DNA of 64,000 nt from Podarcis liolepis (lineage: Eukaryota). The stretch lies in NCBI GenBank assembly GCA_965112155.1, contig OZ218117.1. The stretch is one strand, 5' to 3'. Below the pieces are notes generated by a model, which worked only from the letters and a program-made list of their open reading frames with translations, was not told the origin of the DNA and made no database searches. The stretch's first letter is position 1; each line of letters starts with the position of its first letter. A program made the position numbers and the translations under genes. Below are positions 522 to 54,580 of the stretch, in pieces.

Positions 522-720
522 CCCTAACTCCCTAACCCCCTAACCCCCTAACCCCCTAACCCCCTAACCCTAACCCTCACCCTCACCCTCTAACCCTCTA
601 ACCCTCACCCCCACCCTCTAACCCTCACCCTCTAACCCTCACCCTAACCCTCACTAAAACCCTAAAACCCCAACCCAAAAACCCTAACCCATAAACCCTA
701 AAACCAACTCCATCCTCGAC
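522..720. repeat. Degenerate vertebrate telomeric repeat (CCCTAA)n, C-rich strand on +
   Basis: ccctaa/ccccctaa/ccctca/ccctctaa units directly after the N-gap (12-521) at the window start; orientation as expected for a left chromosome end. Confidence 0.9.
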
Positions 721-1760
721 ACCAACCCTTAAAACCCTGAAACCCAAAACCCTAAAAACTTAACACCCTAAACCCTAAAACCCCCAATCCCAAATCCCTA
801 AAACCCAAAACCCAAAAAACCCAGAAACCCAAACCTGATCCCCAAGCCGAACCAGTACCAAAACCAGAAGCCGAACCCAAACCCCAATCCCCTAAACCCT
901 GATCCAGAACCAAAACCGGAACCAGAGCCAGAACCCGAATCCGAGCCAGAACCAGAAGCAGAACCCGAGCCAGATCTCGAACCAGAGCCAGAACCAGAAC
1001 CACATCCAGAACCTGAACCAGAACCAGAACCCCAACCCTAAGCTGAACAACAACCCCAACCCTATCCATAGCAAAAACCCAAACCCGAACCAGAACAAGA
1101 ACCCCAACCGTAAACCGAACAAGAACCGAAAACCGAACCTGAACCAGAACCCTAACCCTGAACCCCAACCCTTACTCCAACCCCTACCCTAACCCTAACC
1201 CAAACCCAAGCTCCAAACAGCACCCAAACCCCAACACCAAGCCCAACACCAGCACCCTAAAATCGTAACCCTAACACCCCAGAACCGAAACCCCAACACC
1301 CTAAAACCGTATCCTTGAATCCCCAACCCAAATTACTCAATGCTAAATTCTTAAGCCACGCACCCGAATGCCCAATTTCCAAATCCCAAAATCAGAAGCC
1401 TGGAACCTAAAACCCTAAACATTAGCCACTAAAGAGGAGACCGAATTCCTTAAACCCATAATCTTAATTCCCAAAGCTTACATCCGGAACCTGAAAGCAA
1501 AATACTTGTTCAAAAAACCAAAGGAACCACACGTAATGCTCAAAACATAAAGTACGAAAGCCAAATTAAGAATCCTTTACCAGAAAACCCAAAGAACAGT
1601 ATTTTAAACAAGAAACCTAGAGTTCAGAACCCCAATCCCAAAGGAGAAAACCCAAAACATAAATCCCCAAATTCGGAAACCGAAAACCCAACCCTAACCC
1701 CATAATCCCCCAACCCCAGAACCCCAAATCCAAGTACACCAACCACCTCTCCTACAGCAA
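721..1760. repeat. Telomere-associated variant repeats (CCAGAA/CCGAAC/CCCAAA hexamers, decaying inward)
   Basis: Hexamer periodicity is clear at 850-1200 (ccagaaccagagccagaacc), with interspersed ccctaa up to ~1700. Confidence 0.75.
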
Positions 1761-2509
1761 TTAACCGAAATGCCGTAATGCACCATAGGAAACTTAAAGC
1801 CTAAGCAGACTGACCTCATCAAGCTCTAATGATCTCATCAAAATTTTGTTCCTACCTTTCTCAGGATGGGCGCTTCTCCTCCTCATCCATTCCGGTGATG
1901 AATGTGCGATGTAGACATTATCTATTATTGAAAGGAATGGAAGACTGATCAGGTGGGAGAAGGCAGAGCGTTCTCTCCTTCTTCCCCTTTTTCATCAAAG
2001 TGTGCTCAAGGAAGCGCACCCACTTCTGGATTCCTTGACTTCCCCACCCATCCCCTTTCCATGTCCATTTCGGCTAATGCACATAACCAAAGGGTGATAA
2101 GACATCCCCAAAAATCAACAAAAAGGGATCAATCGAAGCCGAAACATAGAACAAACATTGAACCCGAATGTTCACTGTTGCACGGTACAATCTGGAGTAT
2201 AAGGCGGTCACTCATTTATCGTATTGCTCTGCGTGACAGTCAGTGAAGATGGAAGCATATAACTTTTATGTGTCACATCCTAAATTATTGTAACTTTGCC
2301 ATCATGAAAATATCCAGGAGGCTCAAGACTACCCCATGCAAAACTGTAAAGTCATTTTAATAACAATTCACTGCACGTCACTTCGTTGGTTATTGGGGAT
2401 GAGGCAAAGCCGCACTTGGGTGGCATAAATGCATCAGGAGTGGGTTTTTTTTTTTAAATGGTATTTAACGTTAAATGTTAATATGTCTTCTACTTTGTTT
2501 CTCCCTTAC

Positions 2510-3800
2510 CTTCATGACTTTTCCTCCATCTCCCCTTCTCCCGTCTTGCGCAGTTTCCTCTTCCACCTTTTTAGAGCACGAATCCAGCAGAGCAGACCTG
2601 AGAAATATCATTAATATCAATCAATTACACAATATTCTAAAGAGGGGACCACATCAAAAAAAAAACATGTTTGTCTATCTTTGGCAGCTATGTAAAAAAG
2701 TATTAGTTCAGAAAGGAGTCGCCCATCTCTCTATTGTAAAAATGCTAGAAAATTTTTTTCCCCATCTTTTTTCTGGTTTAAAATTACCGATTTACTTCCC
2801 CAACAATCTTATAATGAAGCATCTAGCTAAAAGGAACCCCAAGGGTAATCAATTCCCACCCGCCGCAAGGGAGGAATCTCCGAAGAAACCACAATATTTT
2901 TAATTAAAATTTAAAAAATTATTAAAAAGTGATGGAATTGGCATCTTGAGAAATTAGCTTTCTACAGAAGCACTGCTTCAAGCAGTTTGCTATACATTAA
3001 GGGCGGACTGAGGGGGAAATCATTAACAATCTTCCCCTTTTTTTAAAAAAAAAAAAAAAATAAGTTGCCTGTTCACAGCCAATTACTCTGGATTTGCCCT
3101 CCCTCCCCCCCCCCCAAGTCCAATAGGTAATTAAAAGATAATGCTAAGGCTTAGTGGGGAAGAGGCCATTTCCCCCCTCTAGTTTGTTGTGATTTTTAAT
3201 ACTAAAAATAATGCAAGGTTTATTGAAGTTATGAAAGTATTACTGTTTCCCAGACACCATCAGAATATTTTTTAAAAAGCGACAAAACAAAACATACCAC
3301 AAACTTCCCCTACCCTTTCACATTTACAGTAATAAAATTAATGATATTATTAATCTATTACTCTTTTCCAGTCACAAATAGTATTTAAGAAAAGGGGAGC
3401 AAAAAATTCAAAATTCCCCTCACACTTTCATAGAAACACGCATTACAGTAAGAAAAAGTCTAAAATAAAGGACAATTATCATTTCTTCCTCTCCCTCAGC
3501 AGAATAACGAGTAATTCGACAAAACGTTTTAAATTACAGTCTTCCCTAAGCCCTCTTCTTAAATCAATGATAATAATAATTGTATTACATATCAGTTACA
3601 AATATAATTCAGGAAGGAATTGTTATAACCCATTATCATCATTTTCCCCCTTCTCCCCACAAAAGAGTCTTAAAATACCACCCAAACTCACGCGCTTCCT
3701 TGGATGAAATGGCGAAGGACCAGAGACGCTGAAGAGAAAAGCGCGCCGAAGGCTAGGACCCGCCCACAGCCTGAACTGGGATTGGCCGCACGGTCGACCT
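2510..3800 (-). ncRNA. Putative spliced non-coding transcript running toward the telomere (exon 1 ends 3692; exon 2510-2597)
   Basis: Donor at 3686-3691; exon 2510-2597 has acceptor tttctcAG and donor AAG/GTAAG; the same splice sites are kept in paralogous copies; no coherent ORF. Confidence 0.45.
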
Positions 3801-4145
3801 ATCGCAGTAGAATGCCATCAACCAACATGGCGGCGAAGGCGACGCTTCTCCCTTTCTTCCCCCCTTCTTCCACGTCCAGTTACCCTGTTCAAATATGGAC
3901 GCCCTAGGCAGCCCCTCTCTCTGCGCACGCGCCCAGCATTTTCACCACCAGCAATCTCGTCGGCGCTATGTCGGCCCTCGGGCCAATGTCTGGTAGGTCG
4001 ATGGGCGGGGCCATGCCTTGCGCGCCTTTTTTCGAGCGTTTTGAGCTTGGCGCGCACTTTCCCGCTTTTATTCCTCGCAGGTGTTTCTCAGCCGTTTCTC
4101 CTCAGCGGTTTCCCACGCCCTGGACGCCAAGTAAGTGTAGGCGCG
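3680..4145. promoter_or_regulatory. Subtelomeric CpG island, putative bidirectional promoter
   Basis: CpG-rich in an AT-rich background. GC box cccgccc ~3758; ATTGG (CCAAT) 3781; YY1-like aacatggcggc 3824-3834; NRF1-like tgcgcacgcgc 3922-3932. Minus-strand donor GC/GTGAGT (3686-3691) and plus-strand donor AA/GTAAGT (4131-4136). Confidence 0.7.
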
Positions 4146-5247
4146 TTTCTATTTCTGTAAATGATTATTAGCAGTACTGTTTAAATTATTTCCATTTTTA
4201 TTATTAGGATATGCGTGGCGGATTTTGCAGTTCAGTTTGTTACGTCCCTTTTTTAATATTTTGTGTTGAGCAGCTGGGGAATGGAATGGGAATAAATGAG
4301 GAACATCCTTCAAGTTTAAATTGTTATTATTCTAATTTCAATGGTTTTTATGCTAAAGGGGAGAGGGAAGTTTGTTGAAAAATTTTTTATTTTAAAATTT
4401 AAAACATACTCTGTTGGTTGCTTGCAAATAGAAATAATTCAATTTTAGGTAATGTATAATTATTATTGTTATTAACAATCAAACCCACCCAAGTGTGGCA
4501 CCCAAAGCCTAAACAGCATGGGATTTTTATTTCTCCCAATTAGTGGGAGAAGCAACTCTAGAGGAAAGAGCTGTGGTAATATTAACTATAACTATTAATT
4601 ATTATTTATGTACAGTAAATGATCAAGTGTTCATCGCTTTTCCTCTCAGGCTGTCTTAAACGTTTTGAGAACTGTACCTGAACAATGTATTGTACTGTTC
4701 TGCCACTGCTTCAACCTTTTTTTTTCAACCAGCAAATTCCTCCAGATCCCAGTTACACCAATATTATTATCATTATCAGTAGTATTAGTTCCAGTATTAG
4801 TATTATATCTTTTAAAACGAAATAAACCCTTTGTTGTACATTTGCGGATTCCATCCTTACTGCGTGATGGACCGAAAAAGCCTTGGGGTCCCTTCCAGCT
4901 AAATGCACCATATTAATAATATCCCAAGTAACTTAAGAAAAAAAAATTTATTGTTCGTTGGAAAGGGCTTCAGAAGGAAAAAACACTTTTCTTCCATTTC
5001 GTCGTCTGCTGGCTCCTATCCCCCTTTACCCAAGTTCTTTTTCCTCCATAGAAATATGTGCTGGAAATATTATATGCTTTAATTAATGTGGACCCCCCTT
5101 TTTTTTTTTGTATAGTAATTTTCATTATTGTTATTTCAAAGGTCCGCCCTGCTTGATTCCTATCCTGAAATGGAGGAGGAGGAAACTCTGCGTAACGATG
5201 GGAGAAGAGGAGGAGCAGGAAAAGTCACCTGCAGATGTGAAGGGAAG
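4050..5247 (+). ncRNA. Putative spliced non-coding transcript, inverted paralog of the minus-strand unit (exon 1 ends 4130; exon 5142-5247)
   Basis: Donor gtaagt 4131; exon 5142-5247 is homologous to 2510-2597 (reverse complement) and keeps AG/GT boundaries. Confidence 0.4.
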
Positions 5248-6029
5248 GTAAAGTTGGAAAATTATAAATAAGCATAAAACACTTAAGAGCATTCTCAAAC
5301 CAGCCCAGTCAGTCCCCATACATCCCACTGACCACCCAACCACAGCAGTACAGCACTTTAACAATACAGTAAAATAATTTAATTTATTTGAATGAGGAAG
5401 GCCAGCACCTCCAGGCTTCCCCCATGTTGGTGAGGTTATTCTCCTTTTCCTTTTCTTCTTTGGCTATCTGTAGGTGAAAAAGCAATGTGTGGAAAATTTA
5501 AGTTCTGCAGATAAACCATTGCTGTAACCTGATTCCAATGTTATTGCTCCAGAGCACAAACGTTTCATTCCCTAAAAAGAAAGGGAGAAATGCCTGTGCG
5601 TCTTTTGGGGCGTAGCGAGCAGGAGCTGATCCGGGAAAAGGGAGGGAATGGGATCCATGCAGTGGATTCCCTCCGCCCAGGCTCCCAGGGAACCATCTAA
5701 GCGGTAGGGGAGCTATTTCAGTAACGGGCATATAAAACTATGAAAATGAGCTTACAGATATCGAGAGTCCGACAGTGCTCAACCGCGTAGCCACTCTAAG
5801 GTGGATTACAAACAATTTTACTTTGGGGGGCAACCCTGAAGACTGTCTCCTTCTCTAGAACGTGTTTGATGGGCGTTTTCACTGCCTCGCCTTGTTCTAT
5901 CAGCCATAAGCATGTCTAGGCTTGGCTAGTCCAAGAGTATTGCAGTTGCTGTGACCATTTCTCCTGATCCTTCTTGAAAAAGTCTGGAGAGATCTACTGC
6001 AAGTCCCTCTTCCTCTGGCAGTAGTAATT

Positions 6030-9000
6030 CTCCCTCGAGGTCGCATTTTATTTTCCTATCAAGGTCTATTCCAGTTATGTCCACACGGGGGCAGTGCTTC
6101 TTTTCCTAACGAAGTCCATTCCAGTATTGGCCAGACACAGGAGGTCGCTGTTTGTATTTCTATTGATGTTTATTCCTGAAATGTCCACACGAGGGCACTA
6201 CTGTTTATTTTCCTATTGTGGTGTATTCCAGTATTGGCCACACAAGGGCACTGTGCACTGTTTGTTTTCCGATTGAGGTCTATTCCATTTATTCCCACAC
6301 GGCGTCACTTTTTAATCATCTATTGTGGTTTTATGGCCACACACACGAGATGTCTGTTTCTTTTTCTATGGAGCTGTATTACAGTAATGGCCACACTGTG
6401 TCACTGTTTATTCTCCTGTTGTTGTGAATTCCAGAAATGGCCACACACACGGGGTCTCTGTTTGTTAAACTATTGATGTCCTTTCCGTTAATTGCCGTAC
6501 TGTGTTACTGTTTACTTTCCTATTGATGTCTATTCCATAATGTTCCACACGAGGTAAATGTTTATTTTCCCCTAATGTGGTCTATTCCATTAATGGCCGC
6601 ACAGGTTCAGTGTTTGTTTTCCTATCGAGGTCTATTACACAAATGTCCGCACTATGTCGCTGTTTATATTCGTATTGAGATATATCCCAGTATTGTCACC
6701 ACGAGGTTGCTGTTTGTTATCCTATGGAGGTATATTCCATAAATTCCCACATGGGGTCAGTGATTGTTTTCCTATTGCGGTCTATTCCAAAAAAGGCCAC
6801 AGGAGGCCGATGTATATTTTCATGTTCTGGTCTATTCCAGTAATGGTTACACACACGGGTTAAGTGTTTGTTTTCCTATTTAGTTATATTCCAGCAATGG
6901 CCACACTGTGTCAGTGTTTGTTTTCCTATTGAGGTTTATTCCATAAGTGGCCTGACTATGTCACTGTTTATTTTCCTATTGATATCATTTCCAGTATTGT
7001 GTACTCAAGGTCGCTTTTTTGTATTTTTCGTAATGAGGATTATTGCAGTAATGGCCACAGGAGACCGCTGTTTATTTTCCTGTCGAGGTCCATTTCAGTA
7101 ATGGCCACACGATGGCACTGTTTACTTTACTATCGATGTCTAATGCACAAATGTCCACACTGTGCCACTGTCTATTTTCCAATTGATTTCTATTCCAGAA
7201 ATGGCTGAACGAGGGCCCTTTTTTTTTTCCTATTGAGGTGTGTTCCAGTATTGGCCACACACACGGGGTCGCTGTTTATTTTCCTACTGAGGTCAATTCT
7301 AGTAATGACCACACAAGGGCACTGTTTATTTTCCTAATGAGGTCTGCTCCAGTATTGGCCACACTCACAGGGACAATGTTTGTTTTCCTATTGAGGACAA
7401 TTTCACTAATGTCCATACGAGGTCATTGTCTATTTTCCTATATATATCTATTCTGGTACTCGCCGCACAAGGGCACTCTTTAATTTCCTATCAAGGTCTA
7501 CTGCAGTAATGGCCACACAGGGTCACTATTTATTTTACTAATGAGTTGTGTTCCAGGAATGGCCACATGGGGGCAGTGTTTGTTTTCCTATTGAGGTCTG
7601 TTCCAGTATTGGCCACACATTCAAAGTCACTATTTAATTTCCTATTGAGCTCGATCTCGGTATTTGCCATGGGAGGGCACTTTTTTTATCTCCTATTGAT
7701 GTCAATTCCAATATTGCCTACACGAGGGCTCAGCTTGTTTTCCTATTGAGGTATATCGCAGTACTGTAAACCCACACGAGGCCAGTATTTATTTTCCTAT
7801 TGAGGTCTTTTCCAGTATTGGCCACACACACGAACTCTGTGTTTATTTTCCTATCATTGTCTGTTGCAGTTATGTCTACACGCTCTAGGTCGCTGTTTCT
7901 TTTCCTATTGATGTCTATTATATTATTGGCCACACACAGGAGGTTGTTTTTTATTTTCCTATTGAGGTCTATTTCAGTATTTGCCGCAGGAGGTCAGTGT
8001 TTGTTTTCCTATTGAGGTGTATTCCAGTATTGGCCACACGGGGACACTGTTTGATTTACTATGGAGGTGTATTCAAATAATGGCCACACACACACTGTGT
8101 CACGGTTTGTTTTCCTATTGAGGTCTGTTCCATTAAGTGACACACGAGGTCAATGCTTATTTTCCTATCGAGGTCTATTCCTTCAATTGCCGCAAGGGGT
8201 CACTGTTTATTTTTCAATAGAGGCCTATTCCATAAATGGCCACAGGAGGTCAATGTTAAATTGAGGTCTATTTTGATAATGGGCACTCGAGTTCGCTGCT
8301 TATTTCCCTATGTATGTTTATTCTAGTAATGGCCACACGAGGGCACTGTTTATTCTCCTATTGAGTCGAGGTCTATTATGATAATGGCCACAGGAGGTTA
8401 CTGTTTGTTTTCCTATTGAGGTCTATTTCATTGATGGCCACACGAGTTCGCAGGATATTTTCATATTGTGGTCTATTACAATAATGGCCACACAATGGCA
8501 CTGTTTGTTTTCCTATTGCGGTCTATTCCAGAAATGGCAACGCTGGGTCAATGTCTATTTTCCTATTTATGTCCATTCCAGTATTGCGAACACGAGGTGT
8601 CTGTTGATTTTCCAATTTTGCTCTAAGCCAGCAGAGGCCGCACAAGGGCACTGTTTCTTTGCCTATTGTGGTCTATAACACTGATGGCCACACAGGGTCA
8701 GTTCAGTATTTATTTTCCTATTGAGGTTTATTCCAGAAATTGCCACGAGAGGGCACTGTTGGTTTCCCTATCGAGGTCTATTACAGAAATGGGCACACGA
8801 GGTCGCTTTTTATTTTCCTATTGAGGTCTATTTTACTATTGGCCACACGCAGCAGCTCGCTGTCTGTTTTCCTACTGAGGTCTATTCTGACAATGGGCAC
8901 ACGAGCTCACTGTTTATTTTCTTATCAAGGTCCACCTATTTAAGTATTTGCCGCACGAGGTCACTGTTTGTTCTCGTACTGATGTATATTGCAGTAATGT

Positions 9001-12000
9001 TCACCCGAGGCCACTGTTTAGTTTCCTATTGAAATTTATCCTTCCCTGGAATGACCACATGAGGTTCCTTTTTATTTCCAAATTGAGGTCTTTTCTGACA
9101 ATGTCCACACGAGGTCGCATTTAATTTTCCTATTGATGTATATCTATTCCGGTAATTCCCACACGGGGTCTTTGTTTATTTCCCAATTGAGGTCTATTCT
9201 GACAATGACCACACAAGGGCTCTGTTTGTTTTCCTATTGAGGTCTACTCTAGTAGTGAACACACGAGGTCGCTGTTTATATTCCTATTTAGGTCTATTCT
9301 GATAATGGGCACACAGGGTGTCTGATTATTTCCCATTTGAGGTCTATTCCTGTAAAGCACACAGGAGGGCACTGTCTATTTTGTTATTTAGGTCTATTTA
9401 TGTAATGACAACACGAGGACACTGTTTATTTTCCTATTGAGGTATATTCCAATAATGTCCACACGGGGTTAGTGTTTCTTTCCCTATTGAGATCTATTCC
9501 AGTAATTCCCACACGGGGTCACTGTTTGATTTCCTACTGAGGTGTATTCCAGTAATGTCCACACTGTGTCACTGTTTATTTTCCTATAGAGGTGTATTCA
9601 AGTAATGGCCACGCACACGGGGCCAGTGTTTGTTTTCCTATTGAGGTCTATTCCATTAATGGCCACACAAGGGCACCGTTTACTTTCCTATATATGTCTA
9701 TTCCAGTAATGGGCGGACAAGGGTACTGTCTACTGTCCTATTGAGGTCTGTTCCAGTATTGGCCACACACACGAGGTCACTATTTATTTTTCTATTGATG
9801 TCTATTATATTATTAGCCACACACAGGAGGTCCACAGACACTGTTTCATTTCCTATTGAGGTCTATTATATTACTAGTCACACACATGAGGTCGCTGTTT
9901 CTTTTCCTATTGAGGTGTATTCCAGTATTGGCCACACGGGGTCACTGTTTGATTTCCTATTGATGTCTATTCCTGCAATCTCCACACACACGAATTCGGT
10001 GTTCTGTTTCCTATAGAGGTCAATTCCAGTAATGACCAAACAAGGTCACTGTTTTGTTTCCTATTGAGGTGTATTCCAGTATTGGCCACACACACGAGTT
10101 CAGTGTTTATTTTCCCAATTGAGGTCTATTCCAAAAATGGTCACAGGAGGTCACTGTTCACTTTCCTATTGAGGTCTATTTCAGTAATGGGCACACGAGT
10201 TCGCTGTTTATTTCACTATATATGTCTATTCCAGTAATGGCCGCACGAGTTTGGTGTATATTTTCGTATTGAGGTGTATTCCAGTATTGAACACACGATG
10301 GCACTGTTTGTTTTTTTATCAAGGTCAATTCCAGTAATGGCCACACTGGGAAACTGTCTATTTTCCTATTGATGTCTATTCCAGTATTGGGCACACGAGG
10401 TAACTGTGTGTTCTCCTATTGAGGTCTATTCCACTTATGGCCGCATGAGGTCAGGTCAGTGTTTATTTTCCTATGGAGGTCTATTCCAGAAATGACCGCA
10501 GAAGGGCACTGTGTGTTCTCCTATTGAGGTCTATTCCACTTATGGCCGCATGAGGTCAGGTCAGTGTTTATTTTCCTATGGAGGTCTATTCCTGCAATGT
10601 CCGTACGAGGTCTTTTTTTTTTTTTTTTTCCTATTGAGGTCTATCACAGTATAGGCCACACGAGGTCACTGTGTGTTTTCCTATTGAAGTCTATCTATTC
10701 CAGTAATGACCGCACGAGATCGCAGTTTATTTCCCAATTGAGGTATATTCTGGCAATGGCCACGCAAGGGCTCTTTTTTTTTCCTATTGAGGTCTATCTA
10801 TTACAGTATTGGCCACAGGAGGACAGAGTCTATTTTCCTATTTTGGTCCATTTATGTAATGACCACACAAGGTCACTCTGCTTTCCTATTGAGGTCTGTT
10901 TCTTTTATGTCCACACGAGGGCACTGTTTGTTTTCCTATCGAGGTCTATTCTACTAATGGCCACACGAGGTCACTGTTTATATTCCTATTTAGGTCTATT
11001 CTGATAATGGGTACACAGGCTCAGTGTTTAGTTCCCAATTGAGGTCTATTCCTGTAATGGCCACAGGAGGGCACTGTCGACTTTCCTATTTAGGTCTATT
11101 TATGTAATGGCCACACGAGGTCACTGTTTGTTTTCCTATTGAGGTCTATGTATTCCAGAATTCGCCACACGAGGTCACTGTTTCTTTCCCAATTAAGGTC
11201 TATTCTGATGATGGCCACACGGGGTCACTGCTAGTTTTCCTATTGAGATCTATTCCAGTAATAGTCACACGAGGAGGTCACTGTTTGTTTTCCTATTGAA
11301 GTGTATGTATTCTGAAAATGGCCACACGAGGGCACTGTTTATTTTCCTATTGAGGTCTATGTATTCCAGAATTTGCCACACGAGGTCACTGTTTTTCCCC
11401 CCAATTGAGGTCTATTCTGATAATGGACACACAGGGTCACTGTTAGTTTTCCTATTGAAGTCTATCTGTAACAGAAATGGGCACACGAGGTCACTGTCTA
11501 TTCCAGAATTTGCCACACGAGGTCACTGTCTATTCCTGAAATGGCCACACGAGGTCACTGTTTATTTTCCTATTGAGGTCGATCTATTCCAGTAATGGCC
11601 ACACGGAGTCACTGTTTATTCTCCTACTGAGGTCTATTCCAATAATGGCCACACGAGGTCACTGTTTATTTTCATATTGTAGTCTATTTTAGTAATGCCC
11701 ACACAAGGTCACTGTTTATTTTACTATTGAAGTCTATCTATTCCGGCAATGGCCAGACGGGGTCACTGTTTATTTTCCTATTGTGGTCTGTTCCAGTATA
11801 CTCCACACAAGGGAGGTCACTGTTCATTTTCCGATTGAGGTCTATCTCTTCTAGTATTGGCTACACAATGGCACTGTTTATTTTCCTATTGAATTCAATT
11901 CCAGTAATGGTCACTCCAGGTCACTGTTTATTTTCCTACTGAAGTCTATCTATTCCTGTAATAACCACACGAGGTCACTGTTTATTTTCCTATTGAGGGA

Positions 12001-12380
12001 GGTCTATTACAGAAATGGCCACACAAGGTCACTGTTTATGTACCTATTGAGGTCTATCTATTCCAGAAATGGGCACACGGGGTCACTGTTTATTTTCCTA
12101 TTGAAGTCTATTCCGGCAATGGCCTCACGAGGTCACTGTTTATTTTCATATAGAAGTCTATTGTAGTAATGGCCGCACAAGGTTACTGTTTATTTTTCAA
12201 TTGAAGTCTATCTATTCCAGTAATGGCCACACGAGGGCACTGTTTAGTTTTCTATTGAATTTTATTCCAGTAGTGGCCGCACAAGGTCGCTGTTTATTCT
12301 CCTATTGCTTTATTTTCCATTAATGGCCAGACGAGGTCACTGCTTATTTTCCTTTCAATGTCTTTTCCAGAAATGGCTGC
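6030..12380 (+). repeat. 50-bp tandem repeat array (~125 copies) with a CTCF-like motif in each unit
   Basis: Consensus gaggtctattccagtaatggccacacgaggtcactgtttattttcctatt, read directly; copy number is length divided by 50. Confidence 0.93.
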
Positions 12381-12449
12381 AGCCTTAACCATATAGTATT
12401 TTTATTAATTTGAATTGGGTCAGGTAAACCTCCCCTTGGCTACAAAAAC

Positions 12450-13150
12450 ACCATAGTAAGTGGCTGTGATGATAATAATAATAATTAATTCATAATTTAT
12501 ATTTAATAAAGTGCAGATCTCCATTGCTTTCCCCCTCAGGCTGCCCTTAATGTATTGCAAACTGTACAGGAACAATGTATTGTGCAGATGAAGCACTGCT
12601 TGAGGCACTTGTTTTCTAACCAGGTAATTCCTCAAGATCCCAATTCCTCCACTTTTTATTAAATGCAGTTTCCTTGTGGTTCCTTCGCAGATTCCTCCCT
12701 TGCGGTGGGTTAGACTGGATGACCCTTGGGGTCCCTTCCAGGTGGATACACCATTATATGATTATTGGGAAAGGGATTCAGAAAGAAGAAAAGGTGAAAA
12801 GCAGATTTTTTCCAGTTTGTCGTCTCCTGGCTCCTTTCCCACTTGATTCATTCTTCCACTGCAATCGGGGCTGGACATATTCTATGTCCGCTTGAACCGG
12901 GACCCCTCTTTCCCTTCTTGTGAAAATAATTGACATTATAGATTATTATTAGGTGTGAATTCCTGCTCTGAGGAAGAGGAGGAAGCTTCGCCCGATGAAG
13001 TGAGAAGAGGAGATGGAGGAAAAGTCAGCTGCAGGCATAAAGGTAAAAGGGAAAAAATAGAAATAGGAATTGGCATATAACACTTAAGAACAGTTTTAAA
13101 CAACCCCAGTCCTGATATAACACGGCCCCCCCTATCCAGCACAGTACAGT
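12450..13150 (+). other. Promoterless third copy of the non-coding exon/intron module (exon 12954-13042)
   Basis: Colinear with 4560-5350 and with the reverse complement of 35.6-36.35 kb; tAG/ and AAG/GTAAA boundaries retained. Confidence 0.65.
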
Positions 13151-13529
13151 ATATTCCTTCACTTAATCCGCAAACAATGTGCTAATTCTTGGTCCAATGT
13201 ACATTATACTATTGTTGTGTTGATAAAATGAGGTAAAGCTCATTCATATGCTTTGGAATCCAAATGAGATAAATTAAAAGTTTGAAAGGGGAAATAAATT
13301 GAGAGCCATATTCAAATTCCTTCGTGGAAATAACTAGCACCTATAAATTATCATGAATTCTATACCAGCACTGACCACACGAGGGCAGTTTATTCTTCTG
13401 TCAATGTCTTTTTGAGTAATAGCCACACGATGGCACTGTTTACTTTCCTATCGATGTCAACACATAAATGGCAGGGACTGTTTTGGATCTTGTGGATAGA
13501 AATCATGCAGGAGCCTTTATCCGAAGGCA

Positions 13530-13660: not shown

Positions 13661-14668
13661 ACGAGGGGGTTCATACCTTCAGCAACTTTTTTCCGAGATG
13701 TACCTGTGAACAAATTATAGGATCCTGATAGCAGCCTCCTTTGTTGCATTGCCTGCATGTTGTTGTGTTGATGCTTTTGGTGGCCTCCTTATATGAGCTA
13801 AAATTTTGCTTATATACTGCAAAATACACCTTTTGACCAAATACATGCTTGCTTCTTCCTGCTGCTAGTGGCCTAAATTCATACCTGCTTTTTGTTTCCT
13901 TGCACAGGTCACCGAAAGGCAGCTTTTGGATATGATACATACAGAACAAGAACATCATCCAGAACTGTCTCCCTCAGCAGGTAGGCCATCGTTCCCTCTT
14001 TATTTTTTGGAATATCCTAGGTGCTGGCCAGGGTGTTATCTGTGGCCTGACTGTTTGAAACATGAGCGCACAATAAGTGGAGCCCCAAACTCTGCTTGGA
14101 GGCCCAAACTCCGTTTGTAGGAGATGGGAGCAAATGTATTGGTGGGGAGGGTCTGCATGGAAAGAAAGCTCCAGCTCCCAAAGATCAAGAAGACCCTTGA
14201 ACAGGAATAAAACTCACTTCCTAAGACTCAAGGCCAAACAGATAAAATATTCCCGATAAAATTCCATTCCTGAGCAGTTGGAACTGAGTGCTTAGAGGTA
14301 GATTTGGGGCAGAACTCAAAGTGGTGAAATTCATTTTTCTGATTCCATTTTGAAAGGAAATGCTCCCTTTGAAGGGAGAACTAGTGTGTGGTGGGAGAGA
14401 AGGTGGCTTCAAGTTTGGTTAGCTATTTGTCTTCTCCAAACCAGAACTGGTGTTAATGTGAAGAATCCTGAAAGGACACCTAATGTGAAATGTGGATTAA
14501 TTTGACTCAGCCAGGAAACTTGGGGCCAGGCCATCAGCATTGCCAGGGTCTTTGTTGAAGGGCAGGACTTTGGAAAGTGGTTCAGAGCCAATGGAATTGG
14601 TCAGATAGTTAAGGATTTCTAGTGCTGCCCCCCCCCACTCCCGCTTGGCTACATTAATGGGCCTGGTA

Positions 14669-15022: not shown

Positions 15023-16369
15023 TATTAATTTTTGATCCATTGAGATAAAGTTCATTTGTATGCTTTGGAATCCAAATGAAATAAATTAACAGTTTGAAAG
15101 GGGTAATAATTTTAGAGCCATATTCCAATTCCTGCGTGGAAGTAACTTACACCTAGAAATTATCCTGAATTCTATTCCAGCACTGACCACATGGGATCAC
15201 TGTTTACTTTCCTATAGATGTTTATTCCAGTAATGGCCACACGGGGTCACTGTTTACTTTAGTATTGATTTCTATTACAGGAATGCTTTTTAAGCTTTAA
15301 AAAGTGTGCATGGGTGCTTAAAATGAATAACTCAACAAAGCAGCAGAGAGTAGCAATTGAAACAGACCCCCCCCATCAGCATTGATCGAATGATCTCTAG
15401 TGCAAATGGAAGGATACATATATTTTAGAATATCTTCTGTATGTCTGCAGCATGAGGTTCTTGTGCCTGTGGCCTTTCTTGCACGGAGTAGGTCTCTGTG
15501 TGTGTTTGTGAGTTTTCTTATTGTTCTGTTCTGGTTCTTTCAGAAGAGCTGCCTCAGAGGCTAGTAGTTGTTAGGGTGTGAAACCTAAGACGCTGGCAAG
15601 TTAGCAATGTCATGTGACTTTAAGTAGTCAAGCTCGTTAAGTTGTTAAGATGCTCAGTATATAAAGAGTGTTTGTTTCCTCTGCCTGTGGGGCGTGAAGC
15701 AAAAAATGTCTGAAAGCTCCGGAGGTGTTTCTGTTATCTTTCTGCGATAAACCTGTCTTTGGAAAGACAGGCTTCCCTGTGTCGTTATTTCTTTGCTGCT
15801 GAGACTCTGAAGCTTGTACTGCAACAAGAATCTCTGCACTGGACTTAATGAATACTCTGCAAAGAGAGCTGTTGCTGGTGGCACAGCGGAAGTGTTTACT
15901 GGACCAGTACAAACTCTCTTAGTAGTTGGCCAAGGTAGATAAAAATAAAAGACAAAAGCTGTATTTTCTTCTGTCGTTTCTTCCCAGATGGGCTGTTCTG
16001 CAGATCAGCTGGCACAACTGGTCTGGCACAACTGGACTGCCCAAGACTGCCATTGGGGCACAGAGCAGGTGAGGAGCATCAGCATGACTGTCTAGTTTTT
16101 AATTGGTGATGATTTTTTTTTATATGTACACAAATATCCCAGAAGCACGACTGCCAGACACTTCTCTTGACACCTGTCTTCTTTTATATATATATAATGA
16201 CCTTTATTATTGATTTAGTGTTAGTTACATACATTATATACACATAATATATCACACTTTACATTTACACTTGGTCTTGAGAGCTGACTTCCCTCCTTCC
16301 TTCTTCCAGCTTCTTTATTTCAGCTTCAATCTCAACTTTGGATGTCCTCTCCCCTGGTGTTTTTGTTTC

Positions 16370-16965
16370 GACACACATATATATACAGTACATACATACA
16401 CACACATATACAGTACATACATACACACACACATGCATACAGACTTATGTNNNNNNNNNNNNNNNNNNNNNNNNNNNNNNNNNNNNNNNNNNNNNNNNNN
16501 NNNNNNNNNNNNNNNNNNNNNNNNNNNNNNNNNNNNNNNNNNNNNNNNNNNNNNNNNNNNNNNNNNNNNNNNNNNNNNNNNNNNNNNNNNNNNNNNNNCA
16601 CACACATNNNNNNNNNNNNNNNNNNNNNNNNNNNNNNNNNNNNNNNNNNNNNNNNNNNNNNNNNNNNNNNNNNNNNNNNNNNNNNNNNNNNNNNNNNNNN
16701 NNNNNNNNNNNNNNNNNNNNNNNNNNNNNNNNNNNNNNNNNNNNNNNNNNNNNNNNNNNNNNNNNNNNNNNNNNNNNNNNNCACATATACAGTACACACA
16801 TATCCACATGCATGCATACATATATATATACAGTACACACACATATACAGTACACACACAAACATATATACACACACACACACATGGGATACACAGTACA
16901 TAAATACACAGTACACACAAACATATACACAGTACAAATACATACACACACACAAAAACACATAT

Positions 16966-18631: not shown

Positions 18632-19122
18632 TGTGAGAGAATATGAGTCAGGACTGACCACACCTATCGGAGAGTGGGAGAATGGAGGGGAGGTCAGGTC
18701 CAGCTAGCCCCCCCCCCCCAAGGGGGAAACTGACAGGAGCAGGGTGAGGGTCAGGAGGAAGGTTGCCGGCTGGGCGTGTACGCCAAGTTCAAATGTACAG
18801 GCACATGAGACAGCAGAAAACCCAGATTGGGAACCAGGCCCTAAAGCCCACCGGAGACAGGGGGAAGACTCAGGGGTGAGACCCCAGCAGACAGGCGGAA
18901 CCAGAGGAGGAAGGAGCAAAGGAAGAGGTGGAGCAAGGCTAGAGTCTTAAAATGGTGTCTGGGGGAAGGAGATTCAGACACAGCTTCAGCGGTCTAGAGT
19001 TTAAGACTTAGAGCTGCACACTACAGCTGTGGAAGCAAAACTGAACTTCAATAAAGACTTCTGTATATATCAACGAACTGGAGTTGCTCCTTTGTAAGCT
19101 GGGACCTCAAGCAGCTCTGACA
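18632..19122 (+). mobile_element. LTR, probably of the Gypsy remnant
   Basis: TG...CA ends, AATAAA at 19050; the 3' end abuts the tandem-module sequence sharply. The 5' boundary is less certain. Confidence 0.6.
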
Positions 19123-20202
19123 ATAGGGTTTCTATTTTTGGAGAGACCATGGGAAAGTGCAATCTCCCTGACCATCGAAGAATACAGACTGTTCTCTGGG
19201 AGGTTACCAGGGTTAGGGGTGTGAGGAGAGGAAAAGAGACACTTCAACCAGCTGTTTGAGCAGAAATCCACCTTGAGAGAAGGCAGGCTGTGCCTGTGGA
19301 AAGGACCAGGCCTTGTGGACGTGTAGGGACTGTGCGATCTTACCCATTTAGAGAGATAGCTAGGTATTTCCCACCGTTCCCTTTGCTCCTTGCTGCTAAG
19401 AAGCGTTTCCAGTGGATGGAAGTGGACTTAGGCAGATGTAGCATTCAACATGAAGAAATAAAGCAGAGCCCATGCAGGCAACCCATCTTTTCCCACTGCT
19501 GCCTTGCCTCTTTTTCTTCTCTTTCCTTTGGCTGCCACGCTGCTGGGTCAATCAGGTGTTTGGTTAAAGGAGCTGTTTGCATCTTGTGCCCAAAGATCCC
19601 CTTTCCCCCTCTTGCCCCACAAGGCAGCAGCAGGAAGGCCCCTCTTCTCCCTCCCTGTCAGGCAAAACCTCCCTCTTCCTTCTCCTCCCCCATTTTGGGA
19701 GAAGGAATTCAGCACAGCCCATAGAGACCTGAGAAATAACGGGGGGGGGGGGGGGCTTTTTTCCAGGAAAACAGAAAGAGGGGTCTGCGTAAAAACAGGC
19801 ACAGGAACTGCCAAACCCTTTCCAAAGAATAATGATGGTCTATAAACCTCTGGAAGGGACCCCAAGGGTCATCCAGTCTAACCTGCTGCATCAAAGGAGT
19901 CCCTTACGGGGAACAATCCTGCAACCTTGGTTATGCAGCAAATGTCACCCTCTTAAATGGCACTTTGAAGCCTGCTTCAGGGATGCACACCTCTCCTGCA
20001 GCTGCAAGTTCAGCCAGGAAGCAAACATGGCCATCCATTATTCTTGACTGGAAACAGAGGAAGCGCTCCTTACATCCTCCCTGGGAGCATTTCTGCAGTC
20101 AGGGGGTGGCCCTGACCCTGACCCCTAAGCCTAACCCTCTCCCTAACCCCAACCCTAACCCCTAGACTTACAACAGCAAACTTTCAACTTGTGACCTTAG
20201 TC

Positions 20203-20548
20203 AAAGGTAAGGGCAAAGGGACCCCTGACCATTACGTCCAGTGTTGCCAGACTCTGGGGTTGCGGCCCTCATCTCGCTTTATTGGCAAAAGAAGCTGGCA
20301 TATAGCTTCCAGGTCATGTGGCCAGCATGTCTATGCCGCTTCTGGCAAACCAGAGCAGCACACAGAAACACCGGTTACCTTCCCGCCAGAGCGGGACCGA
20401 TTTATCTCCTTGCACCTTGTGCTTTCCAACTGCTAGGTTGGCAGAAGCAAGGACCCAGCAACGGGAACTCAGCCCGTCGCGGGGCTTCGAACCATCAATC
20501 GGCAAGTCCTAGGCTCTGTGGTTTAACCCACAGCGCCACCCACATCCC
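20203..20548 (-). mobile_element. Sauria SINE (lacertid type)
   Basis: Minus strand starts ggga...gtggcgctgtgggttaaaccacagagcctagg and ends with an (acctt)-type tail. Confidence 0.85.
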
Positions 20549-22332
20549 GTAACTTAAAGGAATGCTATTTCTGTTTGTTCCTTCTGAAGAACATTCCAAA
20601 AAATCAAATGATACTACATTTATATCTACATCTGGAAAGGACCCCAAAGGTCATCCAGCCCAACCCACAGCAAGGCAGGAATATGCAGGAGAATAACCAC
20701 TAACCTTGCTTCTGCTGTCAATGTTGCCCTATCAAATGGCACTTTTAAGGCAATTTAAACTGCCTCCAGAAAAGGGAAAAACCATGAGCCTGCACTAAGG
20801 GAATGCTCATGAGTATATAAAGTGCCTTTCTTTAGAACACCCCTCTTAACTTTGCAAACTGCTGCAAATTTCCAAAATGCACACATACGTGCCAGTATTT
20901 CTCAATCTAAAGGATTCAATTGGCTTTTGGTTTTGGCCCCCCTTGCAGGGGATCAGCCCACTTAGTCTCCTGCCATTGGGGCTCCCAGCCTAGATGCATG
21001 GCAGGGGACAGTCTAAAATCTTTGCTTCGCCCTTGCTGTGGAGCACATTGCACAGTCGATTTTTAAGGACTGACACACACAAACACCCCCCCTAAACTTT
21101 ATTGAGACATTACTAAATAATAGGGTTTCTATTTTTGGAGCGACCGTGGGAAAATGCAATCTCCCTAAACATCGAAGAATAGAGACTGCTCTCTGGGAGG
21201 TTGCCAGGGTTATGGGTGAGGATAAAAAGAGACACTTCAACCAGCTGTTTGAGCTGAAATCCACCTTGGCAGAAGGCAGGCTACGCCTGTGGAAAGGACC
21301 AGGCCTTCTGGAGGTGTAGGGACTGTGCGGTCTTACCGATTTAGAGAGATAGCTGGGTATTTCCCACCATTCACTTTGCTCCTTGCTGCTCAGAATCTTC
21401 TCCAGTGGATGGAAGTGGACTTCGGCAGATGCACCTGCCTTTGGTAACTTCATGGAGATGTCTGGGAGCTGCCTTGCCTCTTTTTCTTCTTTCCTTTGGC
21501 GGCCACGCTGCTGGGAGAATCAGGTGTTTGCTTAAAGGAGCTGTCTGGATCTTCTGCCCCAAGATACCCTTTCCCCCTCTCACCCCACAAGACGGCAGCA
21601 GGAAGGCCCTGGCACTGGCACCTTTGAGGCACTGGCATCTGGTCTCAAAAGATCCCCTCTTCTCCCTCCCTCTGTCCGGCGAAACTGCCTAGTCCTCCCC
21701 CTTTTGGGGAGAAGGAATTCAGCACAGCCCTTTGAGACCTGAGAAATATCAGGGGGGTGGATGATTTCAAGAACTAAAAGAGGGGTCCGTGTAAAAAGAG
21801 GCACAGGATCTGCCAAGCTCAAATGAATGTGCAAGGAATAATATCCTCACAGGAAGCAAGGGGACTAGCCCATCAAACAACTAACTGTAAAGAACGCTAT
21901 TTCTCTTTCTTCTTTCTGTAGCCCTTTCCAAAGAAAAACGTGGGTATATAAAGCTCTGGAAGGGACCCCAAAGGTCATCCAGTCCAACCCGCTGCATCGC
22001 AGGAACATTCAGGACTCCCTTACGGGGAACAATCCCGCAACCTTGGTGGTGAAGCAAATGTTCCCCTCTTAAATGGCACTTTGAAGGCTGCTTAAGTATA
22101 ATTCAGGCATCCCCACCTCTCCTGCAGCTGCAAGTTCAGCCAGTAAGCAAACATAGCCATCCACTATTCTTCACTAGAAACAGAGAAAGCTCCGCTTATG
22201 TCCTCCCTGGGAGCATTTCAACAGTCAGGGGAGACCCTGACCCCTAAGCCTGACCCCAAGCCTCTCCCTAACCCCCTACCCTAACAACAACCCAAACCCC
22301 AACCCCTAGACTTACAACAGCAGACTTACAAC

Positions 22333-25300
22333 TACAATTTCTGAATCGCTACAGGGATCAATTTCCGAATCACGACAGGGAAGACCTCCTGAAAGGAACA
22401 GTAGGAGAGGAAATAACATCAGAAACAAAAGATGAAACAGACATTCTAAATTGGACGTTTGGACAGAAATCTCCGACAGAGGAAGAACAACGACTCGGAG
22501 CGACAGGAAGTAAATAGCTTCAGGATGGCCCTGCAACTTCTAAGCTGGAATTGTAATGGACTTAACCTTCCGCGAAAGACAAATATTTTTTTCCACTTAT
22601 TGAAAATAGAACACTTGGACTTAATTTGTCTACAGGAAAGTCATATAACAAGACTGCATAGGAAACTAATCATCAACAAGAGATTAGGCCTAAAATTTAT
22701 TTCATCGGACAAAGTTAAGAAAAGAGGAGAGGTAATCTATGCAAAGGAAAAACTCTCGCCAAAGTTTTCATTTAAAGATGAACAAGGAAGATATTTGGCA
22801 ATTGAAGTGCAAGTTCAAGGTGAAGGTGAGAAATTTTTGATACTAGGGATCTACGCACCTAAAGAAGGGAAGTCAGAATTCTTTAAGAAGCTGCATGAGA
22901 CACTGTGGGACTATTTAGACTACAAAATAATTAGGATGGGAGACATGAATGGAGTGGTCTCTACAAATAGGGACAAAGCACAAAGACAGGGAATCACCAG
23001 AGATGAGAGACTACCAAAGACTTTCTTTGAAAGGACTGAAAATATGGACTTGATGGATATTTGTAAAACAAGGAACCCCCTCCAGAGAGAAACGGAACCT
23101 TCTTCTCTGAAGCAAGGATGACCTGGACCAGAATCGATCAAATTTGGATGACTAGTGGGTTGGCTCCAAAGATTAAGAAAGTGAAAATCGGCCCAAACAC
23201 TTGCTCCTACCATAACGCCGTGAAGATGGAGATGAAATTTACAACAACGGGTCCATTCAGATGGAGGATGAATGACACCCTGTTTCGAGATGAGGAGATC
23301 CACAGAAAGGCTCAAAATATATTAAAGGACTACTTTGAAATAAATTTAAAAGCCAATGTAGAAGAAAGAGTGATCTGGGACGCAAGTAAAGCTGTAATGC
23401 GAGGATTTATAATTCAACAAAACTCAGTAAAAAAGAGAAAGCAAAATGAGAAGACAGATAAGATCTTGGAAAAGATAAAAAAAGGAGAGAAGAAATGGAG
23501 ATCAAAATCAAAGTCCCAGGAGATTTTAAGAGAGATTAAGCTATATCAGACACAATACATGGAATAGATGAATCAAGAGATTGAATGGAAAATAAATCAA
23601 ATGAGACAAAAGACATTGGAATCTGCAGATAAATGGGGTAAACTTCTGGCTTGGCAATGGGAAAAAAGAAAGAAACTAAACACAGTTACAAACCTAGAAG
23701 GGGACAGAAAAAATAGATCTAAACCCAACGAGATTAGAAACAGTTTTTTGAATTACTTTAAAAAATTATATTCACAAGGACCACAGAAGGAGGAGGACAT
23801 AGATGAATTCCTTTAAAAAAAGGATTACAAAAAATCTCTCATCAAAGTAAGGTGGATCTAAACCAGAGAATAACAGAACAAGAGATAGAGGGTGCCATTC
23901 AGAACATGCAACGGGGCAAATCTCCAAGCTTTGAAGGAGTGGTTGGTACAACCATTTAAGGAAGTCTGCAATGAGATTTTAGAAGGGAAAAGGGCACCAG
24001 AATCGTGGAAAGAAACGTACATTACACTCATACCAAAGACAGAGACTGAAAACACTCAACTTAAGAACTACCGCCCAATATCATTACTTAATGTGAATTA
24101 TAACATTTGGGCAGACATTTTGGCAAAAAGACTGAAAAGAGTGTGGATGGAGAAGATTCATAAGGACCAAGCAGGCTTTCTCCCCAAAAGGCACTTATCA
24201 GATCATGTGAAGAACATAATAGACATTTTGGAATGGCTAGAGGTGAATATAAACACTAAAGCAGTTCTGATTTTTGTGGACGCAGAGAAAGCCTTTCACC
24301 ATATTTCTTAAGAGTTTTATGAAAAAGAATCTTCATGGGATGGGGGTAGGCCAAGGATTTGAGAATGGTGTGGGTGCTATACACTCTCAAAAAAAAAGGA
24401 AAACTGATTGTAAATAATAGGATAACTGAAGAATTTAAAATAGAAAAAGGGACACGACAGGGGTGCCCAATTTCCCCATTGCTTTTTCTTTCTGTTCTGG
24501 AGGTGTTGCTAAATAGGATTAGAGAGGACCAGCAGGTTAAAGGGGTACAGGTCGGAGCAAAACATTACAAGTTAAGGGCCTTTGCGGATGACTTAGTACT
24601 TACTTTACAAGAGCCAGATACTAGTACAAAAAGGGTGTTGGAGTGAATTCAAGAATTTCGTCAAGTGGCCGGATTTAAACTGAACAAACAAAAGACTAAA
24701 GTTTTGGGGGAAAATTAACAGTCATGGAGAGGGAGAAGTTCCAGAATGAAACAGGCTTGACAGTGGTTAAGAAGGTGAAAGACCTAGGGGTTCATTGGAC
24801 ATCTGAAAATTTGAACTTGTATAAAGACAACTATGAAATAGGTGGGTCAGAAATTAAGAAAGATTTAGAAACATAGTCAAATTGCAGTTATTAAGATGAA
24901 TGTATTGACCAGAATATTATTTTTGTTTCAAACACGGCAAATTCTTGATGAGATGGACTGTTTCAAGAGGTGGCAGAAGGACATTTCAAAATTGGTCTGG
25001 CAGGGCAAAAAGCCCAGAATAAAATTTAAAATACGGACGGATGCAAAAGAAAGAGGGGGATTTGCCCTGCCGGACTTAAAATTGAATTCTGAAGCAGCAG
25101 CGTTCTGCTGGCTGAAAGAGTGGATGCTCCTCAAGAATACAGATATCTTGGATCTAGAAGGTTTGAATAATACATTGGGTTGGCATGCATATGGATGGTA
25201 GGATAAAATTAAGGTGCATAGGGCCTTCAAAAAACACATTGTCAGAAAAACATTATATAAGGTTTGGATAAGATAGAAAGATCGGTTGGAAAACAAAACC

Positions 25301-26490
25301 CCTAGGTGGTTGTCACCCTTGGAGGCTAAGGCGGTGAAAAAGCTTAATAAGGAAGCCAAAGGGCCAAAGTATTGGGAAATTTGAGAACAAAATGGAGACA
25401 ATTGGAAGTTACAGAGTCACGAGAAAATAAAATCCAAAGTGCGAGCTTGGCTCCGTTCATATCAGATAATGGAGGTGTACAAACAAGACAGGAAAATTGG
25501 CTTCCGGGTGGAGAAATCAAAATTAGAAACTGAATGGTTAGAACCCAATACTAAGAATTTGTCAAGAATGTATAACTTGCTGCTGAAATGGAATACACGA
25601 GATAAAACAGTTTAATCAGCTAGGATGAAGTGGGCACAGGACATGGGTCATAACATTATGTTTGCTGACTGGGAATGGTTCTGGAACACCGGGATAAAAT
25701 TTACGGCATGTAATGCCTTAAAGGAAAATATTATGAAAATGATCTATAGGGGGTACATGACCCCCGTCAAGCTAGCAAAAATCTATCCTTTGCCCGATAA
25801 TAAGTGTTGGAAATGTAAAGAAACGGAAGGTACCTTCTATCACCTTTGGTGGACATGCCCAAAGATTAAGGCTTTTTGGGAGATAATATAGAATGAAATG
25901 AAAAAGGTACTTAAATGTACCTTCCCTAAGAAACCAGAGGCCTTTCTCCTGGGCATGGTCGGCCAATGGGTGTTGAAGAAAGATAGAACTCTTTTGATGT
26001 ATGCTACAACAGCAGCAAGAAGACTCATTGCAATGTATTGGAAGACACAAGAGCTACCCACCCTGGAAGAGGGGCAGAGGAAGGGGATGGACTATAGGAC
26101 ATTGGCTGAGATGACGGGCAGAATCCGTGATCAGGGGAAAGAGACGGCGGAAGAAGATGGGAAGAAATTTAAAATCTATCTTAAGAACTATTATAAAATG
26201 GATGAATGTTAAAATGTCGACGTTTGGAGAAAAAAAAGGAGATTACAGCGACATATGATTAAGTTAAAGACCAGAATAAGAAAAAATATTTGAGATAAAA
26301 TTATTTAGAATTTGCTGAAATAATTTTGGAAATGGGGATGTAGGAAGGGGAGGTTTGTGGGAGTCTGAGAAGTGAGGGATATGGAAAAAAAAGTTATGAA
26401 ATTATACATGTTTGTATGTCTTTTTATTTGTTTGTATTGTTTAAAATATTTTGTAAAACCAAACCAAAAAAAAATTTTTTTTTAAAAAAT
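22333..26490 (+). mobile_element. 5'-truncated, decayed L1-clade (L1/Tx1-like) LINE; ORF2 remnant 22525-26212
   Basis: APE endonuclease motifs (SWNCNG, LQESH, GDMNG, RIDQ), RT motifs (YRPISLLN, DAEKAF, GTRQGCPISP, FADD) and C-terminal CWKC..HLWWTC. Many stops and frameshifts; A-rich tail ~26455-26490. Confidence 0.93.

Positions 26491-36408: not shown

Positions 36409-36443
<35 letters not shown>

Positions 36444-38880: not shown

Positions 38881-54580
<15,700 letters not shown>

Follow-up and report, generated by a model that had tools for sequence, protein, structure and literature searches.

Whether a chromosome end of the lizard Podarcis liolepis possesses its own source of TERRA, the RNA that contains telomeric repeats, is the question raised by a CpG island that lies a short distance from a telomere-derived tract on contig OZ218117.1. 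The window is the 64,000-nt stretch of this contig that was analysed, and positions refer to its plus strand unless stated otherwise. The original prediction placed here a TERRA-type transcription unit, with a CpG-island promoter and spliced exons aimed at the telomere on the minus strand. The layout is present, but the island is a two-way promoter, and related copies of it lie further inward beside a gene of the ZFR family. The structural account, in which a cassette built as a mirror image has been duplicated and its telomere-ward arm truncated, is held with high confidence. The fuller reading, a duplicated and probably active two-way promoter that has been cut short by the telomere-derived tract, is favoured with more moderate assurance.

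The CpG Island and Its Core Promoters

The CpG island spans 3686-4145 and can be read in both directions. It holds 42 CpG dinucleotides in 460 bp, with a GC content of 0.596 and an observed/expected CpG ratio (obs/exp) of 1.04. Elsewhere this ratio is 0.41 (2600-3600), 0.45 (4200-5100) and 0.36 (17001-64000). The island had been described as lying about 3 kb from the CCCTAA-type tract, and this position holds: its start is separated by 3.16 kb from the outermost telomere-type repeat that is unmasked (522), and by approximately 1.9 kb from the point where the tract ends inward (~1750). A bidirectional CpG-island promoter is taken here as an island longer than 200 bp, with GC content above 0.5 and obs/exp above 0.6, and with opposed first exons within 1 kb. 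As far as sequence features go, all of these are found at 3686-4145, the donors at 3691 (minus) and 4131 (plus) being 440 bp apart.

Two opposed core promoters make up the island. The minus-strand core promoter (3726-3805) contains a CCAAT pentamer at 3781-3785, a GC box at 3760-3765, the sequence GCGCGC and a pyrimidine tract. The plus-strand core promoter (3963-4039) is an inverted copy of it, with a CCAAT pentamer at 3983-3987 and a GC box at 4003-4008. Alignment of the reverse complement of 3726-3805 with 3963-4039 gives a score of 38; scores of 2000 shuffled sequences average 15.4 and peak at 29, none of them reaching 38. The centre of ~150 bp between the two cores carries YY1-like and NRF1-like sites. 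Each core leads to a consensus donor, an AT-rich intron of ~1 kb and a copy of the same exon 2 of ~90 nt. The island is a two-way promoter formed by two inverted copies of one core promoter. It has no TATA element, and it combines CCAAT and GC boxes with two opposed donors. Ordinary bidirectional CpG-island promoters, which drive divergent long non-coding RNA (lncRNA), also have CCAAT and GC boxes, no TATA and opposed donors; unlike them, the two sides of the lizard promoter are inverted copies of one another in core, intron and exon 2. GC skew is mirrored around the island, which is a result of the inverted duplication itself and gives no evidence of transcription.

The plus side, which leads away from the telomere, is at least equally well equipped. 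Its exon 1 region (4055-4136, start inferred) has an exon end at 4130 and a GTAAGT donor at 4131-4136. The region is 80% identical to a paralogous copy further inward (copy B, described below), from which the GTAAGT donor is absent. The plus-strand exon 2 (5142-5247) is the mirror paralogue of the minus-strand exon at 2510-2597 and lies within a right arm (4283-5529) that matches copy B at 36751-35401 in inverted orientation. The idea of a promoter aimed at the telomere is thus retained for the minus-strand arm but not for the island as a whole.

The motif scan covered 62.7 kb and used consensus strings for NRF1, YY1, CTCF and other factors. The NRF1-like decamer GCGCACGCGC at 3923-3932 agrees with its consensus at nine of ten letters and is one of only two such decamers in the scanned span. 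A strict YY1 match, AACATGGCGGC, is located at 3824-3834 (one of five), and a core-only ATGGCG at 3708-3713; the YY1-like motifs are all in plus-strand reading. The two GC boxes of the island are among 26 in the span. None of the 26 CTCF-like matches of the scan (at most two mismatches) falls in the island (3600-4200). Nor are the 61-29-37 repeats of human TERRA promoters found in it: the span from 1310 to 6046 is free of arrays according to Tandem Repeats Finder. The motifs are present but single and approximate, and the predicted binding sites are thin.

Paralogous Copies and the Source of the Duplication

Copies of the cassette were found by comparing the window with itself, and the telomeric one is referred to as copy A. 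Copy B (35401-37290, minus strand) is a colinear paralogue of 2300-4170, with exon 2 at 35808-35723, a donor at 36908-36903 and an island at 36895-37265. The colinear blocks of A and B, in the same orientation, are 1810-2106/27884-28182, 2380-2986/35596-36202, 3113-3951/36332-37138 and 4072-4167/37192-37287, and their identity is 66-80%. Colinearity extends for ~2.3 kb to the left of the island and ~1.2 kb to its right, introns and exons included. With a segmental duplication understood as colinear sequence of at least 1 kb that includes non-functional sequence, 1810-4167 is one.

Copy C (37735-38330) consists of a donor-side half (C1, 37735-37915), an insertion (37925-38124) and the inverted other half (C2, 38150-38330). 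Immediately downstream of it are a large CpG island (38.3-39.4 kb) and the plus-strand ZFR-family gene, whose open reading frame (ORF) pieces match zf-met (E 4e-7) and DZF_C (E 0.002, below the Pfam cut-off). Copy D (12381-13131, plus strand) comprises intron and exon 2 (exon at 12953-13042) and matches 36370-35634 in inverted orientation. It is the closest relative of copy B, at a Jukes-Cantor (JC) distance of 0.225.

In an alignment of the promoter copies, the donor motif ACTCACGCGCT and the GC box are each present in three of three. The CCAAT pentamer is found in A and C1 and is deleted in B, the YY1-like sites are found in A, B and C2, and the NRF1-like decamer in A and B. As the motifs that resemble those of TERRA promoters recur in the copies at 36.9-38.3 kb, they are inherited from an ordinary promoter module and give no evidence of a telomere-specific design. 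The predicted source of the duplication is a non-coding divergent unit upstream of the ZFR-family gene, 33 kb away. The island had been thought to be assembled from local parts at the telomere; it is instead an old, diverged segmental copy of a gene-side promoter unit. The NRF1, YY1, CCAAT and GC-box motifs that had been listed in favour of a telomeric promoter are present, but they are common to the internal copies near the ZFR-family gene.

These copies bear on the proposal of a dedicated TERRA promoter under selection, a lizard counterpart of the human NRF1/CTCF CpG-island promoters. Such a promoter would account for the fitting position and orientation of the island, for CpG content that is intact despite its age, and for exons and a core that are better conserved than the introns. 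It would also suit an NRF1-like site that is present in two copies and a one-directional CTCF-like array on the centromeric side. However, the internal copies by the ZFR-family gene have all of these promoter features too, so that conservation needs no telomere function. The island is without the 61-29-37 repeats and without a CTCF-like site, its single NRF1-like match is at 9/10 letters, and the mirror arm that leads away from the telomere is equally well kept. A dedicated promoter of this kind is considered improbable.

The CTCF-like array is a 50-bp minisatellite at 6030-12380 (plus strand) of ~120 units with loosely CTCF-like cores. Eleven cores have at most two mismatches and 43 at most three, all on the plus strand (30 shuffles: mean 2.4, maximum 6), and the resemblance to CTCF sites is a loose one. 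The order of telomere, CpG promoter and CTCF sites that had been likened to the human arrangement is therefore present as a layout, but its ‘CTCF sites’ are these minisatellite units, with none in the island. The minisatellite would fall in an intron of the plus-strand unit, between the exon copies 5142-5247 and 12953-13042. Stray units occur at 13359-13470 and 15165-15286, and N runs at 16451-16598 and 16608-16781 lie within an AC-rich microsatellite region.

The insertion within copy C, a palindrome of 200 bp, would suit a reading of the promoter as transposon cargo, dropped by a Pack-hAT element. The colinearity of A and B (~2.3 kb to the left and 1.2 kb to the right) far exceeds the 1-1.6 kb of a Pack-hAT, and none of the ten inverted pairs of at least 20 nt in 522-9000 brackets the island, a search that misses terminal inverted repeats below 20 nt. 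Transposon cargo is thus very hard to credit next to segmental duplication. The palindrome itself (37925-38124) is near-perfect, with 85% self-complementarity, and resembles a hairpin miniature inverted-repeat transposable element; a related piece is found at 40748-40880.

A recent fold-back palindrome at a broken end was considered and rejected as the origin of the mirror image. With a JC distance of 0.65, no pair of copies is further apart than the two arms of copy A, and each arm is closer to copy B (JC 0.38 and 0.47). The parsimony sites among the copies choose no topology (10, 15 and 12).

Several other repeated sequences accompany the cassette copies. A dispersed-repeat fragment of ~110 nt (2795-2986, 4881-4906, 12595-12790, 35985-36108 and ~8 further sites) occupies a corresponding place in each of the four cassette copies, which indicates that it was present in the unit before duplication. 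The exon of copy D (12953-13042, plus strand) has an ATG, and the next exon candidate at 13910-13981 (AG...GTAGG) is open in one frame. The pair may belong to a small gene or lncRNA on the plus strand that leads away from the telomere, and no Pfam match is found for it. Between the telomere and the ZFR-family gene, blocks in 19-35 kb are mutually similar at 70-96% (19122-22333 versus 26489-31046 and 34248-35048). Examples are 20761-21586 versus 29902-30732 (89.5%) and 22141-22333 versus 34248-34440 (95.9%). These blocks are interpreted as a repeat family or as recent local duplications.

Age and CpG Retention

The JC distances between the copies range from 0.23 to 0.65. Between A and B, identity is 0.88 in exon 1, 0.85 in the core promoter, 0.83 (71/86) in exon 2 and 0.80 in the plus-strand exon 1 region. 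The introns are 65-69% identical, with 0.65 over 951 aligned positions in intron 1. The better preservation of the putative functional parts is one of two signs that the old cassette has remained in use, the other being its CpG content. The obs/exp of 1.04 in copy A compares with 0.81 in copy B, 0.91 in C1, 0.77 in C2 and 0.72 in the island of the ZFR-family gene.

Methylated CpG decays over time, and an island kept free of germ-line methylation usually marks an active promoter. As the CpG content of the island is intact despite the divergence of the copies, in flanks and a window that are depleted of CpG, the island would appear to have stayed unmethylated in the germ line. It is likely, on these grounds, to be an active germ-line promoter.

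The contrary view is that the island is a silent relic, or a promoter of the plus side only, so that the minus-strand ‘exons’ are duplicated pseudo-exons and nothing reaches the telomere. Paralogy does explain all of the ‘exons’, and the reading frame of copy A is broken. The plus side has an extra CCAAT and GC box of its own as well as the best of the donors (GTAAGT), and the YY1-like motifs are all plus-strand. The locus also occurs in no RNA run: of the sequencing runs, two from one sample are DNA-like (word shares 0.56 and 0.30), and one small run labelled ‘RNA?’ has a share of 0.00. This absence reflects the sparse data for the species and not silence. An obs/exp of 1.04 after a JC distance of at least 0.38 is hard to square with a methylated, silent fossil, and it is the minus-strand core, exon 1 and donor that are best conserved (0.85-0.88). 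A silent or one-sided island is hence unlikely, though less so than a dedicated TERRA promoter.

The Telomere-Ward Unit

On the minus strand, exon 1 (3692-3745), which shares 88% identity with copy B, includes a pyrimidine tract at 3731-3741. It ends at 3692, and the GTGAGT donor that follows at 3691-3686 (ACTCAC on the plus strand) belongs to intron 1 (2598-3691), which is AT-rich. Exon 2 (2597-2510) is 88 nt long, with a TCTCAG/G acceptor and an AAG/GTAAGG donor. The donor and the well-bounded exon of the original prediction were both found again in this form. The acceptor AG of exon 2 is retained in all four paralogous copies within the window. Its GT donor is at the same alignment column in three of the four, and a few bases further 3′ in the fourth.

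A tentative candidate exon 3 at 1921-1856 has an AATAG/A acceptor and an AAG/GTAGGA donor, both of which are kept in copy B. It lies in the last block that is colinear with copy B (1810-2106 versus 27884-28182, 69.6% over 306 nt). Homology to copy B stops at ~1810, approximately 60 bp before the telomere-derived tract (~1750), and nothing homologous is found downstream of candidate exon 3. The telomere-ward arm is a truncated copy of the gene unit, with a telomere-facing donor that has no downstream acceptor.

Between 3700 and 577, AATAAA or ATTAAA occurs on the minus strand only at four places, three of them within intron 1 (3219, 3195 and 2899) and one past exon 2 (2356). From 2356 to 577 the minus strand is free of canonical poly(A) hexamers, an absence that is partly a by-product of the G/T-rich composition of this strand.

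A protein gene was rejected as an explanation of the cassette, given stops in its frames and no Pfam match besides LINE (long interspersed nuclear element) RVT_1. The minus-strand frames of 1790-2120 and of its paralogue contain stops in all three. A Pfam search of 108 stop-free ORFs of at least 75 amino acids in 1760-38300, without the minisatellite, gave two matches at E <= 0.001, both to LINE RVT_1. This search misses short exons below 75 amino acids. The exons were examined singly. Exact look-up of eight ORF products (1953-5364) in a protein collection returned 0 of 8, which is uninformative.

A snoRNA host gene was also rejected. A pyrimidine-rich start and poorly conserved spliced exons are reminiscent of such a gene, but no Rfam snoRNA is found in the introns. 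In 1300-64000 there are no Rfam matches at the gathering score, and 1760-6000 gives only two sub-threshold matches at chance level (E 0.1 and 0.87). Two retroelements were observed further inward. A LINE at 22450-26209 (plus strand) has a weak endonuclease-like N-terminus and an RVT_1 match (E 3e-11), while 31153-33315 (plus strand) has a weak GIY-YIG match (E 0.002) that suggests a Penelope-like element.

The Telomere-Derived Tract

The window begins with 11 bases followed by a masked N run at 12-521. From 522 to 1750 there is a decayed telomere-derived tract of a single orientation, with a plus strand that is rich in C and A. Inward from 522, the order is variant CCCTAA-type units, CCCTAAAA-like units, a CCAGAA array and scattered units to ~1750. 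The CCAGAA hexamer array (904-1151, 41 copies) is a telomere-repeat variant that has taken over ~250 bp of the decayed tract. A hexamer count finds no TTAGGG in 577-2176, which indicates a single tract orientation.

As a further alternative, the tract could be an assembly artefact or a telomere-like sequence of interstitial location, and any read-through would then be transcription of interstitial repeats and not TERRA. Only decayed repeats are visible, with 0-4 perfect CCCTAA hexamers per 100 bp from 577 on (577-1776), and 12-521 is masked; interstitial telomeric sites in vertebrates are also the subject of reviews. Against this, the orientation is the one expected for a left chromosome end, decay grows inward from the window start, and the window begins at the tract. 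The probability given to an interstitial or artefactual tract is low, below that of a dedicated promoter.

Predicted Read-Through into the Repeats

The orientation is of the TERRA type, with C-strand repeats on the plus strand at a left end and donor and exons on the minus strand. The geometry proposed for read-through thus stands: the minus-strand unit faces the C-strand tract, so that its RNA would carry G-rich repeats of the UUAGGG type. Minus-strand RNA across 577-1760 would contain ten G-quadruplex motifs, or 8.45 per kb, versus 0.19 per kb in 17-64 kb.

The mechanism proposed begins with an old segmental duplication, which would have carried a two-way CpG-island promoter from the side of the ZFR-family gene to the chromosome end. 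The island would have stayed unmethylated in the germ line and hence be an active promoter. RNA polymerase II setting out from the minus-strand core would find neither an acceptor further on nor, after 2356, a canonical poly(A) hexamer. For this reason some transcripts, spliced or unspliced, would carry on into the G-rich tract and from there into the telomere. They would be read-through TERRA of the gene type, arising from the place where the promoter landed and not from a dedicated design. The sequence anatomy allows run-off into the repeats without proving it, and RNA from the cassette that reaches the telomeric repeats is viewed as a tentative proposal, with clearly less than an even chance.

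A number of observations weigh against this reading. The promoter module is not telomere-specific, and both start sites are inferred from motifs. The ATTAAA at 2356, located 150 nt past exon 2, is a plausible early transcript end; together with the three hexamers of intron 1, it could stop transcripts at least 1.8 kb short of the repeats. Position 1 may not be the true chromosome end, as 12-521 is masked and only the decayed inner tract is visible. The identity of candidate exon 3 is approximately the same as that of its surroundings, and this exon is tentative. The only followable frame, from an ATG at the end of exon 2, stops in candidate exon 3 of copy A, and this broken frame speaks against a protein gene. 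The better conservation of exon 2 than of intron 1 (Fisher p = 0.0008) may in part be inflated by the poor alignment of AT-rich introns. It shrinks to p = 0.029 against the near flanks, and three of six copy pairs show no significant advantage of the exon over the sequence on either side of it.

The cassette is a reasonable candidate for a source of gene-type read-through TERRA. Should its RNA extend into the repeats, one defined chromosome end would have a single-copy, splice-tagged source of telomeric RNA that is easily tracked by reverse transcription PCR, and the cassette would exemplify a telomere promoter derived from local duplication of an ordinary gene promoter. A stronger version, a selectively maintained, intron-bearing ‘TERRA gene’ whose spliced lncRNA leader is continued by telomeric repeats, has little to recommend it in terms of probability. 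If true, it would mean that vertebrate lineages independently recruit duplicated ordinary promoters as telomere promoters, and it would provide a unique, primer-addressable 5′ exon structure for TERRA at one non-mammalian vertebrate end. If the island is silent or the RNA stops short, the locus would be an ordinary subtelomeric segmental duplication. Apart from TERRA, the cassette illustrates one way in which a two-way promoter can arise, when a one-way promoter is duplicated in inverted form together with its first intron and second exon.

Comparison with Known Telomeric Transcription Units

In human, TERRA promoters are NRF1-bound, CTCF-enriched CpG islands that consist of 61-29-37-bp repeats and lie at an average distance of 1 kb from the telomeric repeats (PMC5087959, PMC12242772). 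They belong to a segmental-duplication family with internal copies that sit next to genes, in one orientation, the other or both (bioRxiv 10.1101/2025.05.15.654290). The lizard locus resembles them in having a telomere-pointing CpG island a few kb away, a duplication family with gene-side copies and an NRF1-like motif. It differs in that the island is without 61-, 29- or 37-bp tandem repeats and without a CTCF-like site, and lies 1.9-3.2 kb from the repeats as opposed to an average of 1 kb. The lizard cassette also has splice donors and exons, and its copies are seen within the same 64 kb. With neither these repeats nor a CTCF-like site, the lizard island lies outside the human 61-29-37 TERRA-promoter family.

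According to the literature consulted, TERRA promoters have been characterised in human, while the telomeric signal in mouse comes largely from non-dedicated sources. Among the papers found for TERRA together with lizard, chicken or zebrafish, no title or abstract opening describes a reptile TERRA promoter, which is not proof of absence.

The human DDX11L family gives rise to spliced non-coding transcripts from duplicated gene fragments beside telomeric repeats (PMC7374410). As described there, it is comparable to the spliced and apparently non-coding unit that is predicted here from a duplicated fragment next to telomeric repeats. DDX11L differs in its origin from a helicase gene and in its presence at many chromosome ends, the lizard parent being a non-coding unit beside a ZFR-family gene.

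[quoted passage not shown] As far as the available text of this source goes, the lizard case resembles it, in principle only, as read-through from the last transcription unit before the telomere. The trypanosome system differs in its use of RNA polymerase I, in its polycistronic transcription and in belonging to a protist.

The closest functional precedent is TERRA of mouse Telo 18q, for which RNA data are reported to place the start ~22 kb upstream, as gene-type run-off (PMC7749631). The start in the lizard would be ~3 kb away, and the lizard case is drawn from DNA sequence alone. In both, telomeric RNA would be the run-off of an upstream gene-type unit, with no dedicated promoter abutting the telomere.

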